Assembly: GCA_038496445.1 (NCBI GenBank)
Contig: JALMLS010000015.1
Location: 682,001-746,000, forward strand
Direction of reading: 5' to 3'
Length of the DNA: 64,000 nucleotides
DNA from: Trichosphaerium sp. ATCC 40318
Lineage: Eukaryota; Protista; Tubulinea
Shown: positions 14,884 through 59,800 of the stretch, piece after piece
How the letters are laid out: each line of letters opens with the position of its first letter
Numbering within the stretch: position 1 is the stretch's first letter
The notes under the pieces: generated by a model
What the model was told of the DNA's origin: nothing
The model's input: the letters and a program-made list of their open reading frames with translations, nothing else
Database searches by the model: none
Position numbers and translations under genes: made by a program

Positions 14884-15366
14884 AGCCAATCTATGTACAT
14901 ATCAACAAGAAAAAAAAGAAGGAAAAAAGAAGAAAACAGGGAGCACTTGTTGGACTTAGTAGTATATTAATACTGCAAAAAATTGTAATTACACCAGCAA
15001 TATCCTGATATTTGTGTATCGATGTTTTTATTGCAATCAATAACAATAAACAAAATGAGTTTATTAGCGTATAGTGTGCATTAAAATACTAAGTAAGGAG
15101 CTCCTGAAAGAGTATTCAAAGCGTACATTATATTCCGAGAGAATATTTGGTATTGCGTAGCTGTGAATCGCTCACGCAAGTAACATTCACTCCGTCCTCT
15201 CGCGGTTGATAAATCCAAGACTAGACACGTATTTTTACATGCTTAAGACTCCTTGAAATTGCGAACGTATTACATAAGAGTGAACACTTTGATTGATTTT
15301 GTGCATTTGAATCCCAAGTCAACATTTTTAACACCCAATCCAAAAACTTTGAAACCAACAAACAAC

Positions 15367-16230
15367 ATGTCTGTAAAAGCAAAGAAATACACCCTCAGTC
15401 GCCATAATTTCCATGAGGAATCAGAAGCAGGGTTAAATACTCACATCAACGCAGAGCTTTCTGCTCACTACACGTTAGTAAACCGGTTTTGCTTTTTTTT
15501 TTCATGGCTAAATATTTTCTCCGTATCAATCTTAAATGCTCTTAGGTACACTGCTATGGCAGCTCACTTTGACAGAGATGATGTAGCTTTGCCTGGTTTT
15601 AAAAAATATTTTGCTGAGCAAGCTAAGGAGGAACGACAACACGCTCAAGCGTTCATAGATTACCAAGTACGTTATTTTAATCTATCAACCACTTTGCCCG
15701 CTGCGGAAAAATTCAAAAAGTATATCAATCATAAGTATTTTTACGGACTGTCGTCGACGTGTCTTGCGTCAGTTTGATGAAATAAAAAAAATTTTATCAC
15801 GTGATCGCAAGCCAAAAAAAATTTCATTGTTCAAAAATAACGTTGTAGTATCCAGTGGCTACTTCGTTGTCATTTCTACTATTTTACAAAATTAACACTT
15901 CGCGTTGTTTTTTTTTAACACTTGTTTGTTTAGAATAAGCGTGGTGGACGTGTTCAATTAAGCGCTATCGAAGCACCCCCAACGGAATTTACGCCATTGG
16001 CTGCTTTTGAACAAGCTTTACAGCTAGAGCACGAAATATACGATAAACTATTGGCTCTACACGCAATAGCATCAAAACATAACGATCCTCAATTTTGTGA
16101 CTTTTTGGAGTCCAATTTTCTCGAGGAGCAAGTTGCTTCACTCAAAGAGATTTCTGGTATTATTACTAATCTCAAACGTGTTGGAGATGGTATTGGTGTA
16201 AACATAATAGACAAAGACTTAAGATGCTAA
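15367..16230 (+). CDS. Ferritin (3 exons)
   Basis: RHNFHEESEAGLNTHINAELSAHY, FDRDDVALPGFKKYFAEQAKEERQHA, YQ/NKRGGRV, NDPQFCDFLESNFLEEQV are eukaryotic ferritin signatures including ferroxidase residues. Confidence 0.96.
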
Positions 16231-18911: not shown

Positions 18912-20030
18912 GTCGGTTTAGCCGTATCTACTTGCGTATTATCTCACTAGTGCTTACTCAAGAAACCTAAACACGTTAAGGAGTTGTTTCAATAAGGAAA
19001 GAGGCTCTAAATTGTTCTTGGCGCATCTATCATTTATAAGTATGTTCGTTGTCACTTTTAGCACTGTTAGCTAAAAGGACAACCGTGTAGTTACTCGCCT
19101 TGTAAATTCATAGAAAAACAAACCACGTGCAGTGCAATCTTGTGGTGAAAAAAATAACGAACAAGTGAAGCTCACTTTTATGACTGCTTGCACTAGCGAT
19201 GTTCCAAACGGATAGATTGCAAAATTCGTGTTTGAACCAAATTTTCTTGGTTTATTCGAATATATTCTTCTCGCTTTTTTTGTGGTGAGATAAAACGGCA
19301 CAAATTACATCCTTATTGCTGTCCTGAACCCATTTTTTTACATCTGAACACGTCTGAGACTTTTTTTTAATAGAGCAAGTGGATAAAACTACAAAATTGT
19401 GATAAAATATGTTTTACCTCAAGTGATGGCTATTTCTACTCGTGGAAAGTACTAAAAAGTGGTTTTGAGACAGCAAAAAATAGATCACGTGGTGGGCTCA
19501 AGATTGGCTCGAATTGTCAAAAAAACGTCACCACTGGCACAATTTCACAACAAAAGTGTCGGTTAGGCTTACTGTGTTACCGCTAAAACGTAGGTATCTT
19601 AAACTCACTCAATATAGGGCTTTCAACCACTCTATGTATAGAAATATGCATTTTAAAACGTATGAGAGTGGTTTGGATGAACAAAAAGCACTTGGTGATT
19701 AAAAAAAAAGCCAACAACTTTCAGTTTCACAGTCGCTCTTCTCTGAAAACCGAATCGGAATATATTCGACTATTTCCAACTTTTTACGTTCTGGCGATAG
19801 ATTCGGTATTCTATTCGTTTGGAACATCGCTAGCTTGCACGTGTCAACATATTGAGTTTTTAAACGTGTATACATACCAGTATGTCATGACGAATCAACA
19901 AAGCTATTTAGGACGTTTCTGTAAACTACAATTTGTTCAACCAAAATTAGGACAGTTTCTTTCCCGTCAGTACAAATTAGCTGGCATACAGGTGAAAGTT
20001 GAAGTCCCATATGGTCAGAGTTGAAACAAG

Positions 20031-20165
20031 AAATTCTTCATCCTTGATATCAATTCACAGGAACAACTTTTACTTCTCTTCTTACACTTCTGAGAGACCA
20101 CGGCACAATAGCTCGCCTTAGAGGGCCACAGATAAATACAGATACTATGAAAACAACGAATATCT
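20031..20165 (-). pseudogene. Orphan duplicate of the last exon of G3 (TM end and tail)
   Basis: Near-identical to 21289-21443 with a small deletion; no upstream exons. Confidence 0.8.
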
Positions 20166-20205
20166 TTATACTACAGCCTCTGCGTTCTATGTACATAGCT
20201 GTTGG

Positions 20206-20513
20206 TTAAGCTGAGAAGCATGCATAGAAGTCGTTGCCTTGAATAGTTGTTGCAGAAGTACAGCCTCGTGCATAGCATGTCCTGCATTTTTTAGAACTTG
20301 TTTTTGCTTCTACACCAGGATACTCCTTTTGTGGGCAATGTTTGGTTTTATGCTTACATAGTTGAATTCCATTGTAAACTAAACCCTTCATTAAAACAAA
20401 AACACAAAAGTGAGTTCTAAAGACATACAGTATTTCCTGGAGCATTTACCATTACAGCCTTTGACAATGCATAGCAAGCAAAGAAATACAGCGAAGAGTA
20501 GTAGGAGTTTCAT
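20206..20513 (-). CDS. Secreted 6-Cys cationic peptide, copy P1 (one intron)
   Basis: MKLLLLFAVFLCLLCIVKGCNG/LVYNGIQLCKHKTKHCPQKEYPGVEAKTSSKKCRTCYARGCTSATTIQGNDFYACFSA*. Hydrophobic signal peptide; two paralogues in the window. Confidence 0.8.
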
Positions 20514-21327
20514 TTTTAAGGGTGTAGTTGTTTGTATTGTTGGTGTTGAAGAACAATGCTAATTTAAGTGAGATATTGGCTATTTTACGTTTGTGATTCC
20601 TTAATAACTTACTATTCACTTCTACGCTCATTGAGGTACCCAAAGAAGTGAATAGAATTATAAATGATGCAAGTTAAATATCGGGTAAATAGTTACTACC
20701 GGACAAACTGCAAAAACACGTGCGCCTCGGAAAGGTAGTTTTATGATTGACGCCTTTGGGTAGGCACTTAGGGAGGACATCCAGTGCCACGATTGAGGGT
20801 ACAACCAACCCTAGACTTTTTTTTTTCTGAACTTTCAGCTGATGCCAAAAAATATTACCGATTGAACTTAATGACTAGAGCTCATAGAAAACTGGTACAA
20901 ATTAATATTACTTTTTTACATGTTAACTTACTAGCTCCAGGCGCGAATGCTGGCACATTCAGGCGTAAAGAGGAGTGTTAACCGCGAGAAAACTGTTAAA
21001 ACCTCAAAGAAAATTACAAGCATGTCCAAAGTATCTTGCGCTGAGCGTACGGTATTAACATAGTGTAATAATCTGTTTTAGAGTATAGGAGACAACTGTT
21101 AGACCTCTAAGGTAATCAGAGACGTTAACAGAACTACACTGTACCAAATAAAATAATGGTTAAAAACACGTGGTGTCGCAATATGTATGCGTTGTAGACG
21201 TGGATTTAGTTTTTTCCAGAACTGACAAGATCCGTCAGATCTGACTAGTAGTTTTTGACAGATCTTGCAAGAACTAACAGAAGTTGAGAAATTCTTCATT
21301 TTATTTAGCTACAACTTTCCCTTGATA

Positions 21328-23677
21328 TCAATTCACAGGAACAACTTTTACTTCTCTTCTTACACTTCTGAGAGACCACGGCACAATAGCTTGCCTTAGA
21401 GGGCCACAGATAAATACAGATACTATGAAAACAACGAATATCTATTACATTAGCAAGATCACTAAAATAAGAAGTTGCACTTACTACTAAGAAACCAAAT
21501 ATTGCTCCAAGCACAATGGCTAAAGTATTACTATCACTTCTACAGTCGTTTGTGATTAAAAACAAGTCAATGCCATTGTTAGAGCGTTGTTGTTTGTGGT
21601 CAACACAATCACTGGTTATTACTTGAACAATGCCGTTTATACAAGGTGATGAAATAGCATTGATCACTTTGTCAGATGATGTGTCCACTCCTGATACATC
21701 AATCACAAATGAAGTATTCTGTTTTATCTCAAGGCACCCTAAAAACATTGTAAGAACTACTACAAGGACTTCATAGTACCTTCAACAGTAAGAGTTGTAG
21801 CTGTTTCATCTTCAACTTGTAGGATTACTTCACCTTTGTTTGTGAAATCACCTTTGATCACTGTTGGCGACTGAATAGTTACAATGGCATTTTGAAGTAC
21901 AAGAACGTGAGCATCAATAACGCATACTGATTCCATCGGATAACATTGAATACAACAACTATCCGTACACTCTCTAATTCTTGCTTGTAAAGAAGTAAAC
22001 CAAAAGTTTATTTAGTCACAACGTACAACGACAATCCGCAAACTCTGAAGCATTAATGAAAGCCCAATATTGATCGCTAGTTATATCTGACGCCAGCAAC
22101 ACCTATTAAATAGTCCCAGAGTTGTTACAAAAACGAATAGCATACGAAAATTAGGCAGTGCTGTTTGTCCAAAAAGGTGTGAATATCTGGTCGGGAAATT
22201 AGGCTAGTAATTTGGGATGTATTAACTTTCTTCTGAACTGCGTCTTCCTATGATATGTTAAAAACAATTCAATAGCACGTTCATTGATACCAATTGCGGG
22301 GTAGAAGATAACGTGACATCTTTTGAAATCCTGTTGAAGTGTAAATACACAAATGGAGTGTACCCAGACTCGTGAGTGTTTATGACTGCTGTTGGCCCCG
22401 CATCCAGCGACTCCTTTAGAGTATAGGGAGTGATTCCACCAGTCCTAAAACTTGCACTGTGTCTGCAATTACTACCTACTAGTTTGTATATTGTTGTAAT
22501 TGTAACGCCTATTTCTATATGTATCTGCAATACCAAAGAGTTTTTGAACTCATTGTACTCCAGAAATTCTATTGTGTTGACATAGGCACTGTAATTGAAC
22601 GCACTGGTCTGATTTCGTAAGTATACCATGTTATTTGAAGTCAACGTACTGTTGGAAAGACAGCTAGTTTATTCTCTTCAACATCGAAATAGGAGATAAG
22701 CAAGAAAACAGTGTTGTTGATAGTATGTGCCAGCAATAGAGTTGTATTGTCAGCTACTGCAAAGGCAAAATCATGTACTCTTTCAGTGGCGTTTAAAAAA
22801 GGTGAAAGCCCTTTTGGTAAGTAAATTCTACATCACATAATTTTTTTTTGAAGTATTTTTTTATGTACGTATGGGATTTTGATCTTGGTAAAACTCGAAC
22901 GTTGTTCTGCTATTAAAGAAGTTGAAAGAAACATAGTATATGCCTAACAGTACTTAAATAAAGCGACAGGCGTCGTTTCGATAGTGCATCATACCTTCAC
23001 GTGAGATAAAATTATATGACCTTACAACGAGATTCTCAGAAAGAGGAAATGCATGAGTAGAGCGTATTGATATTTCCTTCAACAAAAAGCACACAATGTT
23101 AGAAGCAAAAGTATACTGTTTGGTGCTTACCTTTGTGGAGATGGTAAGACTAAGGAATGATACACAAAAGCTTGTTACGTTTTTGTGTATCATGGCAAAG
23201 CCTGGGGAATTGTTGCGGTCGACATCATTGGTTAGCTTCGGATCTCTAATGTTCGGAATGAAGAACGGTTCTAATGTTTGATTTCCAACCAGCAAATCTA
23301 CTCATGGCTTAAGTGAACGTAGATATTTTGAAGGTTTCTTACCATCTAGCGTTGTCACTGTAACAATTACACCAGGAACAGATGCTTTGTCTATCAAATA
23401 AGTCAATATGAAACCAAACGACGCTAACCACCTGCATTAGCTGCGAAGATGTAAAAAGTAGTGTTGTATGCTTCTAAAGCGCTCATAGTTGTTGTTCCAT
23501 TTGAAGATATGTCAGTTCCTTCAAGTATCCCACGTGAACTAAAAAACTGATCCAAAGGTGGTGCAGGGCTGAATACAACTAACATGCATAAATAAATAAC
23601 CGTTTAAACAATAATTCTACTTGAGTACCTGGTAGAAATAAAAGCGAGTACAGTATAGCAACGGCGATGGTTAACAT
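21328..23677 (-). CDS. Surface-protein family member G3, module A (TM), no PST stalk
   Basis: Start MLTIAVAILYSLLFLP. Head is APPLDQFFSSRGILEG...TTFYIFAANA. Then ECTDSCCIQCYPMESVCV and tail GPLRQAIVPWSLRSVRREVKVVPVN*. Confidence 0.8.
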
Positions 23678-23744
23678 TTAAACCTGTGTGTAAGTTGATG
23701 CCAAAAAGAGTTGAATGATGTTGTTTTATTTGGGGAACACCAAG

Positions 23745-24343
23745 ACTTGAGAAATAAAACAGAACACCAGTGTCGCTCATCTGTCATTCCTCTGCTACAG
23801 TAGCATTAGCAATATCGTCATCACGCGATATTACCCACATAACACAACCTTCCTAAGAATCATTCATAATGGCAAACCAAGTGCATTCAAGTTCGGCACA
23901 AAAGTGCCATGAAGATCTGGGCATATAAATTGCCATCTGTTTTCAAGTCTTTTTTTTTTAGGTTCTAGAAGTTTCAATCAATAGATTCTTCAAAAAATTG
24001 AGTTGTCTTGGCATTTGGTCTTCCTGAATGCAACATAAATTAGGATAAAAGCACATTGGCTAATAAAAATATCAAACAGAAATTTCAATATTTTCGAGTC
24101 ACGCTTGAAAAGTGGCATTGGTAAACCAATAGAACCAGAGCCGTACTATGTACCCCTCCAGAACCAAAGAAGGAGATAGGTGAAGAGGTGTAATATCAGG
24201 AGTTGAGAAATAAACCAGAACATCACTCATCTATCATTACTCTACCACAGTAGAAATAGCGGCTCGTTTTCATTGAATAGTTCCTTAGGAAAGCTCGTCG
24301 TGATATTACCCAAACAATACGCTCCAAAGAATTATTCATAATG
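23745..24343 (+). repeat. Imperfect ~125-140 bp direct repeat (about 23745-23871 and 24200-24343) in the divergent G3/G4 promoter
   Basis: Both copies contain ttgagaaataaa.cagaaca...ctcatct.tcatt.ctct...acagtag...gatattaccca...aagaat.attcataATG. Confidence 0.65.
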
Positions 24344-27282
24344 AAGGGAGTACAGGTGTTGTTGGCATTCGCAATATTGTTTTACAAAGGTTTTTTATTT
24401 CGTTGGTGTTATTACTAACAACGTAGTAGTGTACACACAAATACCACCCATAGATCAATTTTTTGATTCTAGTGGAATACTTAAATTACCAAACGTAACA
24501 TTGGTTAAAGCACCAGTCATGGGCGGTGTGGAAACATTCACTACAACGTATTTTATTTTCGCTGCTGAGGGAATCACTGGTGAGTGTTAAGCATAATTTT
24601 TCGAGTTATATGTTTATTAAATTGATATTATATTAGGCGGACTGGAGGAAGGAATAGTACTTCGAGTGACAACTCTAGATGGTTCTAAACTCTTATTTGA
24701 TATTTTTGTATTTCGCTTACTACTGTACAGATTGGCTTGCTGGGAATCTAACGTTTGCGCCTGTATTGTTGCAAGGCATCACATCGCCTTGTCTGACCTT
24801 CACAGTTAACAGACGTGGTCCTCTAACGTTTGCTATGTTTCATAAAATCGGAATGGCCTATGCTGTTAAATTCCTCAGCCTCAATTTAGCATTGAAGGTG
24901 CATACAACTATTTTTCTGAATCGTCTTTTTGAAGGCCCCAAAGGTTTGCCTTTATGAAGGCTGTCACTTTACAGCACAGAATGTTTTACTGAGTATTTGG
25001 TTGGTGCCTATAAACGAGCGAAAAGTGTTGTTTCCTTTAAATGAAGAGCGAAAAACTGTTTGTGGCTTAGCGAACATACTCACGTGTATATTTAGATCAT
25101 TTCAGAAGATTCAGAATTTATGTTTCCAGCTGTAGACTCTTTTAATGTGAAATCATACACATTCTTCGCGAGTTATGGTATGATGAAATAATGATTTAGG
25201 CTCTAACTTTGTGTTAGGTTATTACTTTGTAGATTTTCATTTTTTCGAAGGCGATTTGGCAGATACATATGATTTAATCAAATCAACAGAACCTGTACTA
25301 CGTACTTTATAAACCAAAAATACCGTTGATAGTGTCCGTAAACTTACTGTATATGGCTACATAGGTGATATAGATGTGGGTGCAATAGATTCAGCGTTTG
25401 CAGCACTTGCTTCTACGTGTTTTCTTCATGCATCAATAAATGAGATTGGAAAGAATATCAAGTTCACATTCTCTGATACGTTTCAACAGAACGTGCGTAT
25501 TTGACAACCATATTTATCAAGTGCTAACATTAATTCTAGAATGCTACACAATACGTATTGAACCAAACCGATGATATTACAAAGATAGTGTTCCTTAAGT
25601 ATAATCCATTTATACAATCTTTTGTGATTCAAATAGAGACAGCCTTGGGTTTAACAGTTACAGCACTATTTGACGTGTCCATTATAGACTGCGACTTTGC
25701 ATTTGTTTCAGAAGTGCATCAATCACCACCCAATACAGCGCCATCAACTGTAGTAAGCACTATTGATATATATACAACGTTAGTATCTCCATTCTTGTAC
25801 TTGCGCTATGATAGTGACAATGATACTATGATGTTTTCTTCTACTCCGCAACTGGTACATCTTCAGCAGTAATACAAAACTAAAGATTGAACAGGATGAT
25901 CCTTTAACAAAGAACGTGCCAAGCGTTGAAACCATTTACCCATCAGTGTTAGAAGGTATTCTCGACAGAAACAGCTGCAAACTTGTTGTAAGCCTTCGCT
26001 AATTTCTATTTCTGACTTACATAAAACAAAAGGTATTACTGGCAGACATGGAAGATTTTGTTGCCTTTATTGAATTTCGTATAAACTTGTTTCCTTGTAC
26101 TTGTACGAAGTTGTTTTATTTGACATATATGCATTAAATGTATCTAGCAAGTACTCCAGCTCCTGCAAGCCTACCGCCTCTTACAGCTGAACCTGTTTCT
26201 CCAACTGCTGTGACTGTTGTGCCAACACCTCAGCCAAGTATTCCGCCTATTGCTCCACCGACTACAGAGCCTCCAACACCGAATATACCTGTTGGACCTC
26301 CGTCATCAAACCCTTTTCCAGATGTACGCTTTTGCAACCGTCGTTATATTAATGTTTGTTGTTAGATTGAGCCTCGACTTGATTGTATCTTAGAAGTAGG
26401 CAACACCTTCACTTTAATTCTTGGATGGAATACACTGGTACCATTTTCTTGATCGTATACGATTTGTAAACAAAAAAGTGACACCTTGAAGGATACACAA
26501 GCAATTATGGTTGAAAGAGGAGAAAATAATATGATGACTGCTGGTGGTGTATCAATAACAACTCAGCCAACTTCTTTTGCTGGAACTGCCCCGTTTTATC
26601 CTGCGTCAGGACAGTTTAGATTCGACTTCTCAGGTGGGTCAGGCATGTGGATTCTCGGAAGAGGAGTGATCAACTTTGATAGTTCTGATCCAGATACAAG
26701 GTGTATTACTGATGGTACGATTTTCCCAACACATCCTTAACCTCAATATCACTTTTTAGAGGCATCAGTTGCTTTGACAATCAACGAAGCATTTCCTTTG
26801 GATGACAATACTCTCACTGGTATTCAAAATGAAGTTTCAAAAGGAATGGGTATTGATCCAAACATCACAGAAGTAACTCAACAACCAGTTACAAACAAAC
26901 GTCAGGCAAGCACAACTGTTACTGTCACTGTTGCATGTACGTTAAGTTCTATACTTCGTTGTACATGTTCTCATGTATATTTGTAGCAACAAGTACCGTT
27001 CAATCTACAAGCGTTGTTGCAAACTTCATAAACAATGCTACTTTGGTATCACAGACTACAACTAACATAGAGACATCAGTCAATGTTATGGTTGAGGTAG
27101 GACAAGAGCAAAAAATTCGTTAACTTACGCGTTTTGTCTTCATTTAGGATGTCTCTACTCCTGCACCTTCAACCGTTGTACAAAGCACAGATAGACCTTT
27201 ACCACCTGTGGCAACACCAAGCAGCTTTATGATTTTAGAACCTGACTTTATAATTGGGATTCTTATTTTATATTTTATTTAA
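24341..27282 (+). CDS. Surface-protein family member G4, module B (GPI-type C-terminus)
   Basis: Start MKGVQVLLAFAILFYK. Head IPPIDQFFDSSGIL..., Pro-rich stalk, RLDCILE...GGSGMWILGRGVINFDSSDPDTRCITD, NKRQAS. Ends PSSFMILEPDFIIGILILYFI* with no cytosolic tail. Confidence 0.8.
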
Positions 27283-27671
27283 ATCATCACGTGTTTAAAA
27301 TAACATCTTCCATCTAAACAAACTATCTAAATACATTTCTGTGGAGCTCCATTCAACTTAATCACAAACCAAACCTTTCTTTTTGATGATATTTAATGTT
27401 AAGCGAACAAGAATTTTATGACTTGAATTGCCAATTAAATTAAATATGTCACGGAACTGTATATTCGCGAAACTATTTCGCAATAAGCATGATACTATTT
27501 TTCTAAACTTGTACACTATCGTTTTAGTGATTGACAACAGTGTAAGTTGCTTTGTGTATATATTGGCTATAATGAAGTTGTTGAAATCCCAATCCTTTTT
27601 TTTGAGAACGACACCTTGAAAAACTTCCAGTATACTCTCAACTTTCACACTGGTGTATTGTCGAAAGGCAT

Positions 27672-28370
27672 AGTATGTCCGTCCTAATAGCCTTGACCCA
27701 AATAGTCATATCAACCCGTGAACAATCTCAACCACATAGAAATAGAAATATCCGAAGAACAAACAGCAGATTTTTAAATTTAGGATAACGCGTTTGGGTT
27801 TCGCAACAGAAAGATATACGATTCCCCTGCCCTTGTTAGAATATCTATACCTACCGATGAAGCACCTGCAACAGCTGTAAACACGAAAGATATATCACAA
27901 GTATCTCCTTTCATCTATATTCACTTCAACGAAAGTACAAGTAAAATCAAAGGTATTGCTATCAAGAAGCAAAATACACTGCCTTTATACAAACAACACT
28001 TTACTACAGCCAACTGTTGCATCACTCCCAAGCTCTATGCCATCGGTTCTTATTGTTCCTTCCACTCTTTCGCCTGTAGATCCATCTATATTTCCAACTG
28101 CGCCAAACAAAACAGTTGAGTGTAGAAATAGTTCTTGTATTCAATGCAATCCAATGACCACATGCGTCATTGAAACGAATGTTGTTGTACCATCTGATAC
28201 TACTGTGAGCATAATAGCGCCTACAGTGATCGGTGATTTCATAAACAAAGGTGAAGTGATTCTAGTATTCGATGATGAAACAACTCCTACTCTTTCTGTA
28301 AAAGGTATTGTCGTATAATGTAATCACCGTATTTACTTTTTTCTTGTATCTAGGATGCTTAGTGATAATG
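27672..28370 (+). pseudogene. Collapsed G1/G7-type copy (G5) with several internal deletions
   Basis: A G1-type promoter joins directly to the hypervariable head segment, then to the stalk and Cys-rich exon (27956-28318 ORF), and stops after GCLVI. Confidence 0.75.
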
Positions 28371-28608
28371 TGAGCTGAGAGTATGACGACTATTGATAGA
28401 GTTTGATAAAGATCAAACATAGGAATATTTTTTGATTAATGTTAATCAAACCGTGTAAAACAAGTCATTCTTTAACTAGTACATGGTTGAATAACAAAAA
28501 GATGAGTGTACAAAACATACAAAGTATAATGGAATGTTGAGGGGTTTATTGGTGAAACAATAAACGAGTTTATACAGCCTCTGCGTTCTGTGTGTACATA
28601 GCTGTTGA

Positions 28609-28923
28609 TTAATCTCTGCATGTATAGAATTCATTGCCTTGAATAGTTATTTTAGCACCACCACAGCCTCGTGCGTAGCATGGCCTGCATTTTTTAGAAC
28701 TTGTTTTTGCTTCTACACCAGGATACTCCTTTTGTGGGCAATGATCGATTTTCTGCCTACATAGTTGACGTCCGTTGTGAACTAAACTTCATTAAAACAA
28801 AAACACAAAAGCGAGTTCTAAAGACATACAGTATTTCCTGGAGCATTTATAATCACAGCCTGAATCTGATTTGACAATGCATAGCAAGCAAAGAAATGCA
28901 GCGAAGAGTAGTAGGAGTTTCAT
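28609..28923 (-). CDS. Secreted 6-Cys cationic peptide, copy P2 (altered splice sites; possibly a pseudogene)
   Basis: Signal MKLLLLFAAFLCLLCIVKSDSG. Exon 2 encodes (LV)HNGRQLCRQKIDHCPQKEYPGVEAKTSSKKCRPCYARGCGGAKITIQGNEFYTCRD*. The ancestral GT donor reads AT here. Confidence 0.65.
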
Positions 28924-29551
28924 TTTTAAGGGTGTAGTTGTTTGTATTGTTGGTGTTAAAGAACAATGCTAACTTAAGTGAGATATTATCTATTTTACGT
29001 TTGTGATTTCTTAATAACTTACTATTCACTTCTACGCTCATTGGGGTACCCAAAGAAGTGAATAGAATTATAAATGATACAAGTTAAATATCGGGTAAAT
29101 AGTTACTACCGGACAAACTGCAAAAAACACGTGCACCGGAAAGGTAGTTTTATGATTGACGCCTTTGGGTAGGCACTTAGGGAGGACATCCAGTGCCACG
29201 ATTGAGGGCACAACCAACCCTAGACTTTTTTTTCTGAAGCTCATAGAAAATTGGTTAGCGACTTTATCGGTTATGACAATTCGTAACCGGTTCGGTTGTG
29301 GTTATGGTGAAGATGAAAGTTGTTGGCTTCACCCCTCCGGCGCACGTGTTTTTGCAGTTTGTCCGGTAGTAACTATTTCTCCGATATTTAACTTGTATCA
29401 TTTATAATTCTATTCACTTCTTTGGGTACCCCAATGAGCGTAGAAGTTAATAGTAAGTTATTAAGAAATCACAAACGTAAAATAGATAATATCTCACTTA
29501 AATTAGCATTGTTCTTCAACACCAACAATACAAACAACTACACCCTTAAAA

Positions 29552-29857
29552 ATGAAACTCCTACTACTCTTCGCTGCATTTCTTTGCTTGCTATGCATTG
29601 TCAAATCAGATTCAGGCTGTAATGGTAAATGCTCCAGGAAATACTGTATGTCTTTAGAACTCGCTTGTGTGTTTTGTTTTAATAAAGGTTTAGTTTACAA
29701 TGGAGCTCAACTATGTAAGCAGAAAACCAATCATTGCCCAAAAAAGGAGTATCCTGGTGTAGAAGCAAAAACAAGTTCTAAAAAATGCGAGTCATGCGGT
29801 TCACGAGGCTGTACTGGTAAAATAGTTGTTCAAGGCAATAGTTTCTTGCAATGCTAA
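29552..29857 (+). CDS. Secreted 6-Cys cationic peptide, copy P3 (one ~63-nt intron)
   Basis: MKLLLLFAAFLCLLCIVKSDSGCNG/LVYNGAQLCKQKTNHCPKKEYPGVEAKTSSKKCESCGSRGCTGKIVVQGNSFLQC*. Confidence 0.82.
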   Translation: MKLLLLFAAFLCLLCIVKSDSGCNGKCSRKYCMSLELACVFCFNKGLVYNGAQLCKQKTNHCPKKEYPGVEAKTSSKKCESCGSRGCTGKIVVQGNSFLQC

Positions 29858-30391
29858 ACTTAACCACAGCTTGTTTATAGTTTCGCCAATAAACCCCTCA
29901 ACATTCCATTATACTTTGTATGTTTTGTATACACTCATCTTTTTGTTATTCAAACCATGTACTAGTTAAAGAATGACTTGTTTTTACTGTTTGATTAACA
30001 TCAAATATACACGGTGATGTATGTTCACCCAATTGCCTCTACAGTCAGATCCAGTTAATTTGTGTTCACATTTTTTGTAAGCGCTTTGTCAAAGTGCGTA
30101 TGTCTGTTATAACAGAGCACTTACTGTAGTTTAACATTCTATTCCCAGAACGACATGTGATAGCAACAAGTACATTCATTCCATTCTGTGGAGCCTCATA
30201 CAAATTCCTCTACAGCACTGGGTTTATGGCGGCAGAAAAGTAAGGTTAAGCTAACGCTAATAAAACTGACAAGATGCTAAGTTATTTATTTCACACTTAG
30301 AACTGAACAATAGAGCCATTCGTTCTACAGATACATTTACACATGATAAAGCATTAATATGACAGGTGTGAACCACATACAACAATTGTCC

Positions 30392-31309
30392 CTACTTGTG
30401 CTCTCCTTCTCGCTTATCATTGATATAACAACATTGTTCTTGCAATTGGCCATTGTCATTCCAATACTTGTACTCTCCCTGCCGCTCACCATTGATGTAA
30501 TAGCATTGTTCTTTCAATTGGCCATTTTCATACCAATACTTGTACTCTCCTTGCCGCTTACCATTGATGTAATAGCATTGTTCTTTCAATTGACAATTAT
30601 CAGTAGTGAAAGGCATATCATTGTTGTAGTAAAACAGTTTCCTATGGTACCAACATTTGTATTCTCCTTCCCGAATATCATTGATGTAATAACATTGTTC
30701 TTTCAATTGGCCAATATAATACCAATACTTGAACTCCCCATACAACTTATCATTGATGTAATAACACTGTTTCTTACGCTGCCCATTTGAATACCAACAC
30801 TTGTACTCGCCTTCTAGCTTATCATTGACAAAATGGTACTGCTCTTGCAATTGGCCAACAAAACTCCACCTACTATACTCTCCTTCTTGCTTATCATTAG
30901 AGTAGTAGCACCGCTTCTTCGATAGGCCTAAGCCAAACCACGTGCGCACTCCTTCCAATTTACCATTTATGTATTGGTGCTCGCTATCTAAATCACCGTT
31001 TATTCCCCACTCTGTGCGTGTTCCATGACGCAGACCGTGCCTGAAATACTCTCGTACTTTCAGTTGACAGCTATAATTATAGTGATATTGTACCCACTTT
31101 CCATGTTTTTCCAGGGCGCTGTCAAACCTTGTCAATGCTGTGTACCTTGATAAAAGCGGCCACTTGACATAAACTTCAAAGTCTAAATCTAAAATATCAA
31201 GTTGCAGCTCAACTGGGAGGTACGATATACCACAATGATCCACTTTTTTGGTATAACTCTGATATGTCACTAGTGTGATAGACGTAACTACCTTGTGTGT
31301 TAATTCCAT
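30392..31309 (-). CDS. Intronless MORN-variant repeat (YwqK-like) protein with N-terminal F-box-like motif
   Basis: 305-aa open frame. SYLPVELQLDIL is followed by about 8 repeats of the ~24-aa unit EGEYKxWYxNGQLKEQCYYINxK. Confidence 0.85.
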   Translation of the reverse strand: MELTHKVVTSITLVTYQSYTKKVDHCGISYLPVELQLDILDLDFEVYVKWPLLSRYTALTRFDSALEKHGKWVQYHYNYSCQLKVREYFRHGLRHGTRTEWGINGDLDSEHQYINGKLEGVRTWFGLGLSKKRCYYSNDKQEGEYSRWSFVGQLQEQYHFVNDKLEGEYKCWYSNGQRKKQCYYINDKLYGEFKYWYYIGQLKEQCYYINDIREGEYKCWYHRKLFYYNNDMPFTTDNCQLKEQCYYINGKRQGEYKYWYENGQLKEQCYYINGERQGEYKYWNDNGQLQEQCCYINDKREGEHK

Positions 31310-31984
31310 TTGGTTTTATATTCAAATAGCCCTTTATCATTCATTGATTATTAGCAGCGTAGTAATGACATGCTGTTAAAGAGCGTTAATATAAATTCTT
31401 TGAATATAACCTAAATAACACAATCACGTGTACAGCTTATTGTTGACCCTTGCTAAGTCGTTTCGGATAATCTTAGTTGAGCACCATGTGCGTTTTACGA
31501 TAAGTTGTGCGTTCAGTCAATCAAGGTCATACTGTAATTGTTGAGTTCTTGACTAAACGTGATTCTGTGCTTGATTTAATGCACTGGATACCTAACATTT
31601 TAGGTCTTCACGAAGAACAATATTGTTTACGTTAATTTGTGATTGTTTTTTTCATTACACTTGAATGAAATTATTACGCCTTCCATTGGCGCTTGGTCTT
31701 TGACAGCAAGTGAAAGTGGAGAAAAGAGATGTTTTTATTAACGCAGAAAAGAAAAAATAAAAAATGTGAACAACTGCAAAGCTTTGCTGACTCATAAAAT
31801 TTCAACCTGAGTATTTATTTTGCCACGTGCTTAGAGTAGCAAGAAACGAAACAGTAGCACCAGATACAAAACATTCAGAACCGAATATCCACGCTACTGC
31901 AAAAGCACACTGAAGTTGTACGCCAAATACAATGAAACATGAACCAATCATATACCTTGAACAACATTAATGAAAAGCGGTATC

Positions 31985-32515
31985 TCTTACATCGAGATGT
32001 GTTGCTAATAACATATAGAGTACCAGAGGAAGGTATATTACTCCGAGTGACAAACATTGAAGGTAATTAAACCTTATTGTATTACTATTCACTTCGCTTA
32101 CCACAGATTGCCTCGCTGATAATCACACGTTTGCACCTTTGTTCATTCCAAGTATTGATCTCACTGTTTAAACTGATACGAGCGATTCTCTAACGTTTGC
32201 TATGCTTCACAAAACCGAAATGGACTTTGCTGTTACATTCTTTAACATAAATCTAGCAGCGCAGGTGCCATATCAATCTTTCTATAATCCGCGCTCACAT
32301 GCTTCTTGGAACATTTCAGTCAATTCAACAGTTGTGGTTCCAAATGTAGACTATGGCACTGTGAAATCATACACATTCCTCTCAAGATTAGGTACGACAA
32401 AACTATGATTTAGGCTCTAACGATAACATGTGTCATTGAATCAGATATTATCATCACTCCTGATACCAATGTGACTGTAAGTGCCTACAGTGATCAATAT
32501 ACTTGCTAGGGCAAT
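31985..32515 (+). pseudogene. Collapsed G2-type copy (G6)
   Basis: G2/G14-class head exons (LRVTNIE, FAMLHKT, SYTFLSRL) jump to the module-A segment TCVIESDIIITPDT and then to the G1-type upstream region. Confidence 0.7.
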
Positions 32516-32685
32516 TTCATTCAACTGTCTACAACCGACTAGCCTGAAATATGGTTAGAAAGTAGTAAGAGCTTGATAGGATCGTTGCTTTAAATGTTGG
32601 TGTGTACGCGCTAACAGTCTTGACCAAATAGTCATATCAACACGTGAACAATCTCAACACATAGAAATATATGAAGAACAAACAG

Positions 32686-35264
32686 ATGTTTAGTTATGTT
32701 GTGTGTATTATGATGTACTCAATCGTATTATCAATACCTGGTAATGAAACTAATATAGTTAGACATAGATACTGATTTATTTTATTTTGTAGCAGCGTTC
32801 GCGTCAACACCGCCGTTAGATGAGTTTTTTGAGTCGCGTCAGATATTACAAGGTCCTGGAATATCGTCAATCGGTGTATCGAATATGGGCTGTTTAGAAA
32901 CACGTGACACCACATACTATATCTTCGCAGCGAACGCAGGTGCACCTGAAATAAAAATTACACTCTAAATATTACACTCTTTTTACCTGCTTTGTAGTGT
33001 TTGCTATTCCCGGTATAACTATATCAGTGACTACCATTGATGGTACGCAAAGAGCATGTTTTATTTTTACTTATCTATTGGCAATAGATTGGCTTGCTGG
33101 CAACCAAACGTTCACGCCTTTCTTCATTCCAGGCGTTAGAGAACCCAAGTTAACCAATGCTGTCGACCTAAACGATTATCCAAGCTTTGTTGTGATGCAT
33201 AGAAACGAAACTAGCTTTGGGGCAATGTTCTTGAGCCTAGATGTGCCAGCGAAGGTTCCAAGAAATTCCTTTCTTCGCGTCACTTGTTGACAGGGTTTTT
33301 ATTTTAGTCGATTTTGATAAATTCTACCGTTTCATTTGAAGGTCAAGCAGATTTTGCAACATCATACACATTCGTGTCGAATACAGGTGCAAATCTAAAC
33401 AATAGATGTTGAAGATGACAAGGTTTAGGTCGATATTTTGTTCATTTTATTAACACAGAGGAGAGTACAGAAAAGATGTTTGAGATTCATCAATATAAAG
33501 AACCAACACTCATTCGCGGCACACTATCTTGTCAAGTGTTCAATCCACTTACTTAATGTAGATGGAAATAATACAGCATTAGATTCGACATTCTCAATCG
33601 TCAAACTAATACAAACTTACTTATATCTATATCAGATGCGCGCTTATGAAAATAATGTGACATTTCAAATCTTTAATACATCTGGGCAAAGCGTTGTACG
33701 TTCTTATATTTGACAAAATAGTACTAATGAGTTCAGCTTAGGGAGGAGTACGCAACTATTTTCGATATGTTCAAAACAGGAATAGTATCCATTAAATTCG
33801 TTGAGTTTAATTCAGATGCTTCTGCTGTTTTGCAAATACTCCTAGAAACAGGAATTTCTGTTACAACACAATTCAAACTTGCAACGTTAGGAATAGGAAT
33901 GACACAAATATTGGCAATTGCGACCGTAGACGAGGTCGAATATTGTGCGCCTGTTGATGAAGCACCTGCAACAGCTGTAAACACGCAAGATATATCACAA
34001 GTCGCTCCTTTCATCTATATTCACTTCAACGAAAGTACAAGTACAGTATCATTTTCCTCAAGTCCACAAATGGTATTGCCAATACGCAAACTTTTGGAGT
34101 TAACATGTTATGTAGAATAACACATTACAGAAGGAAATAACAACTCAAAATGGTAATCTAACAGTAATCCAAGGCATTCTTGACAAACAATACTGCCTTC
34201 TTGTTGTACGTCGTTTACTTTTTCTTCCATTGTTATTAACTCTCAGCATCAAAGGTATTGCTATCATCAGAAACAAACCAATACACTGCTTTTATTCAAT
34301 CACATGATTATTTATTTAATTGTTGTACGTAACTTTCGGGCAGTTCAGTGTTAATTATTATCAAAGCCACGATTAGCACTTCGCCACCAACAATGTTTCC
34401 ATCAGTGCCAACATCTATTCCGTCGGTTCATAGTGCTCCTTCTACCCTTACGCCTGTATCTCCATCTATGTATCCGTCAGCGCCAAGCTCTTTTCCGTCA
34501 TTTCATATTGCTCCTTCCATGCTTACGCCCATGTCTTCAAACACAACATTTGTTTGTGTGAATAGCTCTTGTCTTAAATGTGACTCAATGACAACTTGTG
34601 TGGTTGATTCAGATATTATTATCACTCCTGATACCATTGTGACTGTAAGTGCGCCTACTGTGATCGAAGGCGATTTCACAAACAAAGGTGAAGTGATTCT
34701 AGTATTCGATGATGAAACAACTCCCATTCTTACTGTAAAAGGTATATTATTGTAAAGTATTGTAATCTATTACAATGTAATAAATGTATTTAGGATGCTT
34801 AGTGATACTACCAAATAGTTCATTTGTGATTGATGTATCAGGAGTGGACACATCATCTGATAAAGAGATCAATGCTATTTCATCACCTTGTATAAATGGG
34901 ACTGTTCAAGTAATCACTCGTGATTGTGTTGATCATGAACAACAACTTTTGTCAACTGGGCTTGTATTGCTTATCATAGCAGGAGAATGCTCCAGTGATA
35001 GCACCACAATAGCAATATCACTTGGAGTAACATTTGGATTCTTATTGGTAAGTTGTCTTTGTAACTCGTTGGAAACATTTCTACTTACTTGTGATTTAAA
35101 AGATTTTGGTAGTGATAATCGTAGCTGTGTTTGTCTTTCGACCTCTAAGAAAGGTAATTGTACCTTGGTCTCTCAGAACACCAAAAGAACAGCTTGCCAT
35201 GAACCAAGTAAATAACTCAGCCTTAACATTTCGTTTCAAAAATAATAAAAGCTACAACCTGTGA
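32686..35264 (+). CDS. Surface-protein family member G7, module A (TM); inverted paralogue of G1
   Basis: Same exon structure as G1, and ORFs 32997-33290 and 34784-35215 match G1 ORFs. One intron has a GC donor (33519). A 1-nt deletion at the G1 stop extends the tail to ...SALTFRFKNNKSYNL*. Confidence 0.8.
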
Positions 35265-56860: not shown

Positions 56861-59800
56861 TTACAGTACAGCGTCTTTTGAGTTTGTTTCTTTAAGCGTT
56901 GACGCTATGTAATGTATTAAAACAAATATTGTTAAGCAAGTAAACATACCATTGCTTGTGTTAGTACCAGTATGGACAGAAGACATTTTAGTACTTTGTT
57001 TAAAGCTCGCTTCTATCATGTACTTATGTCCAAAAAGAGCAATTACAGTCAAAGCTACGCGTATGTTAGAATGTTTGGCAACTCGGCACGTGGTAAATTA
57101 CATACCTGTTCCAGCCATTACAAGAAGAGAAACAATTAAGAAAGATGTAAACCTCTTGAGATTCGCAAAAGATAACCCAAATGCTATCAAAGCGAAAAAG
57201 AAGATATTGTATATTGAGAAAAATAGTACTTTTGACTCATTGTAGCGTTTAATTGGAATCATTCTAACTCGGAATGCAAGAACGCACCCAAAAAGAAGCA
57301 GTAGGGCCTGTGGTACAGTTAAAATCGGAGTAAAGTTTAAAAACGGGTAAGGAGAATTACAAAATGATGTTTGAAAACTCGGATTTGTGAACGTACGTTT
57401 GTACCAATAATGATGTACAGGAAAATGTAGTATACAAGATCGTGATCACATTGGTAGTAGTTAAGACCGTGTCTAATCTCATCAACAACCACATACTCTG
57501 TTGTGTACTTGCCAAGAATAGTCTACAACAATAAGTCTAAAAACAAAAAAAGAATTATTACCAAAAGAGTGAGTAACACCATATGAACACCCAAAAGCGC
57601 TGATACCCACATGAGAACTTTAAGGTTTGAAATACTGAATACAGTTGTACTCTCGTTCCTCCACAATCTCTCTATTCTTAGAGTTTTTGCAAGAAACGGA
57701 CTTGACACAAGTTAGAAAAAAAACGCTTACTTTGAGTGTCTTTTTCGCACCCAAACAGTAGAATGAAACCAATATCTACTAACCAAACACGTGCTATACA
57801 CGTGAATTTTGATACAATATTAGGCATAAAAAAGAAGGGGCTGAAGTAAAGTATAATGCTTCCAATGAGAATAAACAAAAGGAACAAAGGAGATGACGCC
57901 TACAGAAGAATCATTAAGTAAAAACTCTTGATTGTGACCTACAGTAAAAAGATTCCGGGTCCGCTTTGTGAATATCATTGTAAACGTTATTAAAGCTAAG
58001 AAAATAGATAGGGCTATGCTCTTTAGAGTGAAAACAATGGCAACAACAGTTACAAATATTTCACTCCAATGACCTTTCTTCATGTTAGTTCATTCATAAA
58101 ATTACTAACTATATGGAGTTCTTAGCGTACCGTACTCTTGCTTGAAAATACGTTCTTTCCAGGTAGGCATAGGATAAACGAAATCATGTGTTTTAAGACG
58201 TTCAGGAGCAATAACTTCTCTTTTTCCGTTTATGTATTGAATAAAAACTCCTTCTCTTTGCTGAACTTGGTCTGCTCCCCATGAATAACGACCTGATATT
58301 GTATCAAGCTTCATAGAGAATACTGCTCTATATAATTCATCTTGGAATAATCTGAACCCAGCTGTTGTAGTATTTTCCATGTCCTTAAAAATTGTTAAAC
58401 AAAAATTTCTTCAACAACTCCGTACATCTTGGGAACACGTGCACTCATCTTCGGTGTCTATAAAAAGACGCCCATTTTCATCAATCTGAATACACTATTA
58501 ATAAAGTGTACTAACAAAAATAATCACGTGCATCAAGTGTATGGTGTTTTGCTACTTGTTGTATACCCTCCCGAACAAGCAACGACATCGTTAGAGCGTA
58601 AACGTGTGCTTCCGAGACAGTGACATTGAATCGATTGTATATATCCTCACCAAACTGTTTCATTGTACCATAAGTGGTTGGCGAGAAGCTAGCACTAGGC
58701 TCGAACTAAAAGACAATATCAGCTCAACTCTAGTAGTTCCTCAAACCCGTAGAAATGTAATTATATTAACCAGAGTTCGCGAAAGAGATGTGAAGTTTGT
58801 TCTACTTCATTATGATAATCAACACAAATAACGTACCACAGCTACACCTGAGCGAAATTCCCTAAGGTCGTAATCAATGTTTTCTGCAGTCAGTGGCATT
58901 TCACTCACAAAAGCTACGGAGAGAAAACTAAGAACAAAAAAAACCCACCATTGTACGAATATTAGAAAATAATACCTTTTGGCGTGTAGTCCATGTCTCG
59001 AAAGTAGCTTGAAAATATATTACCAGTACGAGATACAGGGTGACAAAATATCCATGCGTCTGGATCCTCAGATATTACTTCATCAGCAGTATCCGTAATA
59101 TTTTTTGTATAACTCGGAGGATAGTCTGCAAGTGGCAAATCAGATCTAATACCAAAGTCTATGAACCGGGTTATGAAAGGTACATAGAAACAAAGTAATA
59201 TTGTACTTCTTGTAAGAGGTATAACGTGTGTGCCAACAATCGTAAAAGCGTTATCCGCCAAGTACTCCAAAAAACTATCACTTTGGCATCTGGCAACAGC
59301 TTCTTCCGCGTAAATCAAACTAACTGTACTCGCACCAGCTAGTCGTAAAGAATTTAAAGTAATCCTTTTTGAAAGAATAAATAAGCAAGGCGATGAGTAA
59401 TTTGTGACATCACGTGATAGTACGTAGTACGTAGCATAAAGTCAGAAAAAATTAAATTTACGCACCTGAACATATCTTCACTTGGCGATACTATAGAAAC
59501 ACCACGCCTAGCTTTACCGAAACCAGCACCAATCCAAAAGACTATAGAGCTGTTAATATTTTCGCTAAACAAGCGAAAAACTACGCACATCCTGCTGCAT
59601 CAATTTGTTCAAGTATTTCACCAACGGCTGTAGAGCTTGGTGTACCAAAAGGACCATAGAACACTGAAACACTCGAATCATTTATGTACTTTTGATATAA
59701 CGACTTTGTAATAGTTATGTTTCCCCCATCATCCTCTATTACAAACTTGAAGCGAATATTTAAAGTGTCATTATTTTTATCGCGAACCTAACACAAAAAA

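Follow-up and report, generated by a model that had tools for sequence, protein, structure and literature searches.

Hypervariable cysteine-rich peptides with predicted signal sequences form an orphan gene family in Trichosphaerium sp.

A stretch of 64,000 nucleotides from Trichosphaerium sp. ATCC 40318 (assembly GCA_038496445.1, contig JALMLS010000015.1, positions 682,001 to 746,000), referred to here as the window, contains three genes for small cysteine-rich peptides, c1, c2, and c3, lying within an array of receptor-like genes. Judged from their sequences, the window peptides belong to an orphan family that is well defined and numbers 16 genes and one fragment in the genome. The encoded peptides have a predicted signal peptide, eight invariant cysteines, and a basic mature part whose coding sequence has diverged far more than the introns and 5' flanks around it. 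We are highly confident in this description of the gene structure, the family, and its conservation pattern. The function that we rank first, that of host-defense or anti-microbe (prey-killing or competitor-directed) effectors, is tentative, and we put its probability at roughly 40 to 45%.

Gene model and size of the family

The window is part of the contig designated C9, in an assembly of 70 Mb and 642 contigs; it has about 36% G+C, and its spliceosomal introns are short. The three peptide genes, at 20206 to 20513 on the minus strand (c1), 28609 to 28923 on the minus strand (c2), and 29552 to 29857 on the plus strand (c3), are each intact and consist of two exons (Table 1). An initial annotation, made from the window sequence alone, had placed them correctly, and all of the peptide strings that it quoted are present. 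A repeat finder showed the 5' parts of the copies to be 93 to 97% alike and the 3' coding part of c1 only 82% like that of c3. The core described as invariant, EYPGVEAKTSSKKC, is indeed invariant in c1 to c3, and the proposed spacing C-x6-C-x16-C-x2-C-x4-C-x13/14-C is correct for exon 2. The number of cysteines had to be revised from six to eight. Our splice model, derived from aligning every genomic copy of the family, uses a donor, GTATGT or GTACGT (GTAYGT), that is kept in all 16 paralogues immediately downstream of the S-R-(K/R)-Y codons and one further base, and because this conserved donor places two cysteines in exon 1, the mature peptide has eight.

About 48 to 78 nt past the donor comes the acceptor, a TAG, and the intron, which measures 48 to 50 nt in the window copies, is in phase 1. 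The base preceding the donor varies (T, G, C, or A); joined to the two bases that open exon 2, it encodes a hydrophobic or basic residue. An alternative upstream donor, GTAAAT, occurs in c1 and c3 and is missing from c2 and most other paralogues. For the gene on contig C211, the frame is kept only if splicing uses an AG located seven bases before the usual acceptor site. The spliced models of all 16 genes are open, with ATG, donor, acceptor, frame, stop, and all eight cysteines retained, and encode precursors of 85 to 90 amino acids. Each consists of a predicted signal peptide of about 19 amino acids and a mature part of 66 to 71 amino acids with the pattern C-x2/3-C-S-R-x-Y ... G-x2-L-C-x6/7-C-P-x3-Y-x-G-V ... 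S-K-K-C-x2-C-x2-R-G-C-x13/14-C, to which exon 1 contributes the C-x2/3-C-S-R-K-Y segment.

The gene model is confirmed by a transcript. An exhaustive search of 1.84 billion protein representatives with an exon-2 peptide profile returned a single match, P0001 (E 4e-23), which is transcript-derived (MMETSP Transcript_20384) and is a complete open reading frame (ORF) of 87 amino acids. P0001 is residue-for-residue identical to the spliced model of a pair of paralogues on contig C140; this confirms both the splice and the eight-cysteine product and shows that at least one family member is transcribed. Searches and folding of the full-length peptide used P0001, and the exons were searched separately.

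Relatives outside the genome were sought in several ways. Word-index protein searches with c3 exon 2, the c3 ORF, and P0001 gave no match beyond P0001. A scan of metagenome contigs yielded 292 pattern matches, of which none was confirmed as a relative. The ESM Atlas, searched by features or by shape, offered no usable relative, the shape matches having template modeling (TM) scores of at most 0.52 and coming from unrelated families, and sequence searches of the PDB recovered no relative of the peptides. Pfam gave no match with the exon-2 peptides or the unspliced c3 ORF; with P0001 it gave two matches, both below threshold, to Zn_ribbon_RlmA (20.4 bits, with a cutoff of 27) and to DUF7836 (E 0.05). 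Rfam found nothing in positions 19500 to 30500, and the literature searched contained no report of a comparable peptide family in free-living amoeboid protists. The family is an orphan and is lineage-restricted, with relatives seen only in the Trichosphaerium sp. genome and in P0001.

Within that genome, the whole assembly was searched at the DNA, protein, and profile levels, and each approach gave the same total of 16 genes and one fragment. Four of the genes are on C9, three in the window and one at about 515 kb; two genes and the fragment are on C192; C140 and C219 each carry two genes arranged head to head, those on C140 having identical coding sequences; and C156, C61, C211, C2, C13, and C10 have one gene each. 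The family of three copies first described inside the array therefore stands as far as those copies are concerned, and it extends to further contigs. Head-to-head inverted pairs recur, on C140, on C219, and in the window, where c2 and c3 (28609 to 29857) are oriented in this way. The introns of the C140 pair differ by a 12-nt indel despite the identical coding sequences.

Divergence of the mature part and conservation of the cassette

Among the three window copies, variable columns number 10 of 200 in the 200 nt before the ATG, 1 of 54 in the signal peptide, 3 of 49 in the intron, and 38 of 167 in exon 2, which bears out the earlier remark that promoters, signal peptides, and introns are nearly identical beside a variable mature part. 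Rates were measured on the seven closest paralogues, namely c1, c2, c3, and genes on C192, C156, C61, and C211. Their mean pairwise p-distance is 0.059 for positions -200 to -1, 0.039 for the intron, 0.086 for the signal-peptide codons, 0.185 for the mature part of exon 1, and 0.220 for exon 2, so that exon 2 has diverged 4 to 5 times as much as the intron and the 5' flank. Variable columns make up 76 of 170 in exon 2 versus 35 of 251 in the intron and flank together (Fisher p = 4e-12). This contrast in rate between the mature exon and the flank and intron is solid.

Codon comparisons point in the same direction. By the Nei-Gojobori method (NG86), the mature part of the seven paralogues has a synonymous divergence (dS) of 0.19 and a nonsynonymous divergence (dN) of 0.27, with dN/dS above 1 in 19 of 21 pairs and reaching 3.5 for c1 and c3 and 3.6 for c2 and c3. 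The maximum-likelihood (ML) estimate of the same ratio, omega, is 2.25 under the GY+F1X4 codon model, and fixing omega at 1 costs 4.98 log-likelihood units (2dlnL = 9.97, p = 0.0016). Omega for the signal peptide is 0.73. Across 15 of the 16 genes, C140b being left out as its coding sequence is the same as that of C140a, omega for the mature part is 0.84, at a depth where synonymous sites are near saturation. The changes are not spread evenly. The eight cysteines are invariant in all 16 genes, and invariant or near-invariant features besides them are SR-x-Y, the glycine before Cys3, C-P, Y-P-G-V, S-K-K-C, and R-G-C. The variable stretches lie before and between Cys1 and Cys2, in the six residues between Cys3 and Cys4, and over nearly everything from Cys5 to the C terminus; loop columns show up to nine residue states.

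The noncoding parts of the genes are conserved as a unit. In the ten genes that are closer relatives of one another, conservation reaches upstream from the ATG to about -250, and genome-wide the -250 to -1 block is found only at family genes and at one extra site, on C203. We considered whether the block might be a generic repeat and rejected this, since it occurs at no other places. The C203 copy (57626 to 57804) has 74% identity to the promoter block, and none of the searches detected a peptide exon near it; the site may be a promoter remnant standing alone. Landmarks of the block are a CACGTG at about -210, a TATA-like box at -150, and a consensus donor, GTAAGT, at -99, which, with a TTAG 54 nt later, possibly marks an intron in the 5' untranslated region (UTR). 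A 19-nt leader, CAACAATACAAACAACTAC, occupies about -30 to -11 and ends about 10 nt before the ATG; in c3 it is found at 29523 to 29541. The leader is exact in 11 family genes, has one mismatch in a few more, and is kept even between paralogues with only about 45% peptide identity. With at most one mismatch allowed, it occurs at 16 sites in 70 Mb, 14 of them before family genes, and the reversed control occurs at 0. The two remaining sites, each with one mismatch, are on C57 and C118. Downstream, a 3' block of about 145 nt, with an AATAAA 25 to 60 nt past the stop, is common to most members. The palindrome TCTCT[C/G]AGAGA was looked for at the peptide genes and is absent from them.

The window copies also show traces of exchange. 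Copy c2 is a mosaic: it resembles c3 from -215 through exon 1, including a 9-nt SDS insertion, and the 3' half of its exon 2 and the 30 nt that open its 3' UTR are like those of c1. This indicates that segments have been exchanged between copies 8 kb apart. The unit that spreads is a cassette of about 0.9 kb with its own conserved promoter, 19-nt leader, intron, and 3' block, and the cassettes often pair head to head and swap segments. Two short dispersed repeats flank peptide cassettes, one of about 117 nt at 30278 to 30394, present on more than 25 contigs at 84 to 88% identity, and one of about 70 nt at 20878 to 20950, present on more than 12 contigs. They may be elements of the miniature inverted-repeat transposable element (MITE) or short interspersed nuclear element (SINE) kind.

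Table 1. Parts of the three peptide genes in the window (window coordinates)
Feature	Position	Strand	Description
c1 5' flank, conserved	20514..20900	-	CACGTG at -209, TATA-like box at -150, putative 5' UTR intron donor GTAAGT at -99, 19-nt leader
c1 exon 1	20429..20513	-	Predicted signal peptide of ~19 aa, CNGKCSRKY, first base of split codon
c1 intron	20379..20428	-	50 nt, phase 1, GTATGT...TTTAG
c1 exon 2	20206..20378	-	Encodes six Cys; stop codon 20206-20208; AATAAA absent from the next 200 nt
c2 3' UTR	28436..28608	-	Opens with ~30-nt insertion common to c1, then conserved family 3' block and AATAAA
c2 exon 2	28609..28781	-	Six Cys, stop included
c2 intron	28782..28829	-	48 nt, phase 1; GTATGT present, GTAAAT absent
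c2 exon 1	28830..28923	-	Predicted signal peptide, then SDSGCDYKCSRKY
c2 5' flank, conserved	28924..29126	-	Arm of inverted repeat in common with c3
Spacer between head-to-head c2 and c3 promoters	29127..29348	.	222 nt separating the promoter arms
c3 5' flank, conserved	29349..29551	+	
c3 exon 1	29552..29645	+	Predicted signal peptide, then SDSGCNGKCSRKY
c3 intron	29646..29693	+	48 nt, phase 1; open in frame by chance, giving a 101-aa unspliced ORF
c3 exon 2	29694..29857	+	Six Cys, stop included
c3 3' UTR block, conserved	29858..30004	+	AATAAA at +31

Position relative to the receptor-like array

The array genes around c1 to c3 encode orphan single-pass membrane proteins, receptor-like in architecture and with no above-threshold Pfam domain. 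The initial annotation had raised the idea that the peptides are polymorphic ligands of these variable receptors, which would make the region a ligand-receptor recognition locus. For hypervariable receptors such as these, the locus would serve self/non-self or mating-type recognition. There are features that suit the idea. The three copies sit inside the array, 0.3 to 0.8 kb from receptor gene ends, with flanking receptor genes at 21305 to 24400 and 24429 to 28318, both families diversify fast, and the C13 gene has a relative of the receptor head about 5 kb away. Known systems provide a parallel, since in the S-locus pair SCR/SP11-SRK of plants and in Dictyostelium tgrB1-tgrC1 a small, variable secreted cysteine-rich protein or a variable partner is encoded beside variable single-pass receptors.

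The genome-wide distribution of the two families argues otherwise. We probed the genome with three array exons, encoding the membrane/juxtamembrane, head, and stalk parts, and obtained 72, 33, and 61 matches, respectively, which cluster on C9 (559 to 760 kb), C398, C560, C131, C93, C26, C20, C67, and C54. Only 3 of the 16 peptide genes are inside the array; among the 13 outside the window, the C13 gene alone has an array-type exon within 10 kb, and 12 of the 16 have none on their own contig within 40 kb by the three probes. The nearest array-exon match is 44 to 76 kb away for the peptide genes on C2, C140, and C61 and for the gene at 515 kb on C9, and contigs C156, C192, C211, C219, and C10 have no match to any of the three probes. 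The flanks of the peptide genes, searched at the other loci over 1.5 kb to either side and as far as 10 kb on one of them, contain no array exon save a weak stalk-like match (E 2e-5) near the 515-kb gene. Conversely, about 60 to 70 receptor loci have no adjacent peptide gene. Linkage thus holds for 3, perhaps 4, of 16 genes, the variation observed is between paralogues and not alleles, there is no allelic series, and there is no homology to the SCR/SP11-SRK or tgrB1-tgrC1 proteins. Nor is there any similarity between the peptides and the cysteine module of the receptors.

The local arrangement also bears on the matter. The c2/c3 cassette occupies the place where relatives of the receptor-like gene at 24429 to 28318 carry a membrane exon. 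That gene, on the plus strand, ends after its stalk exon and has no membrane or cytoplasmic exon, unlike its array relatives, and is either a truncated or a secreted form. Positions 1 to 2865 of C398 are 99% identical, in reverse orientation, to window positions 30033 to 32891, and the last 1357 nt of that contig (2866 to 4222) have no similarity to the window, the break lying 175 nt past the c3 stop. As the similarity ends by c3, the c2/c3 cassette borders a rearrangement or a haplotype difference, and a pair placed at a breakpoint beside a receptor gene lacking its membrane exon speaks against the ligand idea. The receptor exons on C398 match those on C9 in part and otherwise differ, and the contig is either a structurally different haplotig or the product of a recent segmental duplication. 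That c1 to c3 reside in the array seems to reflect chance, through the mobility of cassettes where the region is plastic, and not a rule of the family. We consider it unlikely that the window peptides are ligands of their neighbors. It is more doubtful still that the three array copies in particular were recruited as diffusible ligands, with this stretch of C9 being a recognition locus built from two orphan families. The proposal of a ligand-receptor recognition locus is therefore not supported.

Other neighbors of the peptide genes were noted. An intronless F-box-like gene with MORN repeats (30392 to 31309, minus strand; Pfam MORN_2, E 7e-13) lies beside c3, and such a gene is also near three other members of the peptide family. 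We rejected it as a meaningful recurrent neighbor: a first look gives more than 2300 candidate loci for this very largely expanded family, and the adjacency is therefore at chance level. Between receptor genes, at 15253 to 15777 on the plus strand, there is a ferritin-like exon (Pfam Ferritin, E 6e-10), a housekeeping gene in the array region.

Predicted structure and candidate functions

The mature peptides are all basic, with a net charge of +4 to +11 and an isoelectric point (pI) of 8.7 to 9.7 across the family and +7 to +9 and 9.1 to 9.3 for c1 to c3. We infer that the peptides are secreted and that the mature domain contains four disulfides. Structure prediction had been recommended in the initial annotation, in which the fold was not recognized. 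Exon 2 alone gave a poor AlphaFold model, with a predicted local distance difference test (pLDDT) score of 62 and an empty fold search, whereas the full mature domain of P0001, with exon-2 rows as the alignment, reached a pLDDT of 85 and a predicted TM (pTM) score of 0.68, which indicates that the exon-1 strand belongs to the fold. The model predicts a small all-beta fold of five strands (residues 6 to 13, 18 to 24, 35 to 43, 56 to 59, and 62 to 67). No match to this fold was found with Foldseek against the PDB, where the best E was about 1 and a few three-finger toxins of the short-chain neurotoxin type had TM scores of 0.27 to 0.30, or with VIA-align against 48,161 representative chains, where the best Z was 2.9. 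Re-scoring of the Foldseek list with VIA-align gave a best Z of 2.3, with no three-finger chain.

Three-finger toxins and Ly6-uPAR proteins do share with the peptides a length of about 60 to 70 amino acids, eight cysteines, five strands, and fast-evolving exposed loops. The window peptides differ from them in cysteine spacing and in having neither the C-terminal CC-x4-CN nor any adjacent cysteine pair, and three-finger chains gave Foldseek E values above 1 and did not reach a Z of 2 in either of two VIA-align runs. Defensins, macins, and fungal AFP/PAF proteins likewise have a signal-peptide precursor, six to eight cysteines, positive charge, a small beta-rich structure, duplication, and, as is likely for the window peptides, positive selection. 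Their cysteine spacing differs, and no helix is predicted in the window peptides; none of the three groups gave a match in Pfam or by fold, and for the defensin and AFP/PAF families this holds for Pfam at E up to 10 and for PDB sequences as well.

The below-threshold match to PF21302, Zn_ribbon_RlmA, leads to another kind of extracellular role, in which the peptides would be protease or enzyme inhibitors, components of a cell coat or cyst wall, or metal-binding mini-domains like zinc ribbons. The match (E 5e-4) covers P0001 residues 22 to 51, which are residues 3 to 32 of the mature part, and includes C-P-x-C, a hairpin, and a second cysteine pair, giving two C-x2-C knuckles in P0001. The reactive loops of inhibitors also evolve under positive selection. 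The first knuckle is C-x3-C in 8 of the 16 members, though, the signal peptide puts the domain in an oxidizing compartment, and there is no fold or sequence match to inhibitor or zinc-ribbon structures. We regard roles of this kind as rather improbable.

By its mode of evolution, and not by homology, the family matches a well-known kind, the hypervariable secreted cysteine-rich multigene families. Conotoxins, defensins, and the mussel MgCRP-I proteins evolve in the same mode, with a conserved leader and a hypervariable mature part (PMC4558851, PMC3823881, PMC4018336). The likeness to families of the conotoxin and MgCRP-I type (PMC4558851, PMC3823881) extends to multiple genes with conserved signal and noncoding parts, an invariant cysteine frame, hypervariable inter-cysteine loops, a dN that is probably above dS, and raised synonymous change in the mature part. 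It does not extend to sequence or fold, and the window peptides have no pro-region; they are all-beta (as predicted) and of 66 to 71 amino acids with eight cysteines, come from a unicellular amoeba-like protist, and have a putative function.

On this basis we propose that the peptides are a lineage-restricted family of secreted cationic effectors in an amoeba-like protist, with a fixed scaffold and a fast-changing surface. The scaffold comprises the eight cysteines, the CSRKY strand, CP-x-K-x-YPGV, and SKKC-x2-C-x2-RGC; change is fast in three predicted surface stretches, one at the N-terminal tip, one in the loop from Cys3 to Cys4, and one in the C-terminal hairpin. The peptides may be released or delivered to phagosomes, with microbes, prey, or competitors as their targets, and selection from varied microbial targets would drive their diversification. 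Defense or prey killing is ranked first because a secretory-pathway, strongly cationic, disulfide-rich family duplicates and diversifies in a bacterivorous protist. Of the antimicrobial or toxin effectors suggested in the initial annotation, the secreted, cationic, and diversified character fits the signal peptide, the charge, the cysteine frame, and the estimated excess of dN over dS; the activity itself stands as the tentative reading given above.

An alternative that explains some of the same features is that the peptides are secreted signals, pheromone-, cytokine-, or quorum-like, with receptors elsewhere, and that discrimination of partners or strains drives the diversification. Ciliate pheromones and plant cysteine-rich peptide (CRP) signals are also small secreted cysteine-rich proteins with a conserved leader and a variable mature part (see also PMC5557327), and the close conservation of the promoter and 19-nt leader suggests that the genes are regulated together. 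Sixteen paralogues with uniformly high positive charge suit effectors better than a set of signals, and we think a signaling role fairly unlikely.

Several points weigh against the effector interpretation or against the evidence used for it. Cationic cysteine-rich peptides serve also as signals, inhibitors, and structural proteins. The c1 to c3 clade is absent from the public protein collection, and only one paralogue is known as expressed; c1 lacks the family 3' block and its AATAAA. The fold alignment is shallow (15 rows) and the five models span pLDDT values of 57 to 85, for which reason we call the fold unmatched and not new. Counting gives a dN/dS of 1.41 with a codon-bootstrap 95% interval of 0.85 to 2.40 and P(dN<=dS) = 0.09, and because this interval includes 1, positive selection rests mainly on the ML test, which assumes one tree although the copies recombine, as the c2 mosaic shows. 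The dS of the mature part is about four times the intron divergence (0.05), and constraint on the flanks or homogenization may contribute to the rate contrast, so that it would not be due only to acceleration of the exon. The dN/dS check that had been called for thus comes out in favor of selection by ML and short of significance by counting, and we consider diversifying selection on the mature part likely but not proven.

Some of these same observations, the counting interval, the missing 3' block of c1, and the absence of the window copies from transcript-derived proteins, together with the fragment on C192, would suit a reading in which constraint on the duplicates is relaxed and they are decaying, with neutral drift as the source of their apparent diversification. 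Decay is hard to reconcile with 16 genes that all keep their start, splice sites, frame, stop, and cysteines, with an ML omega significantly above 1 and not equal to it, and with scaffold motifs that stay invariant while adjoining residues vary. We judge it very unlikely and retain the effector interpretation as the leading one.

Animals and plants provide well-documented families of defense- or toxin-like peptides in which a conserved leader precedes a hypervariable mature part. The Trichosphaerium sp. family is a clean case: its 16 genes share an apparently new predicted eight-cysteine beta scaffold and have a promoter and leader of their own, and the excess of amino acid change among them is measurable. 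Binding of the peptides to the neighboring receptors, if it occurs, would make the region a recognition locus of a new kind. If the peptides are antimicrobial, they would represent a new peptide scaffold and would offer a way to study how a bacterivorous protist deals with varied prey and pathogens.

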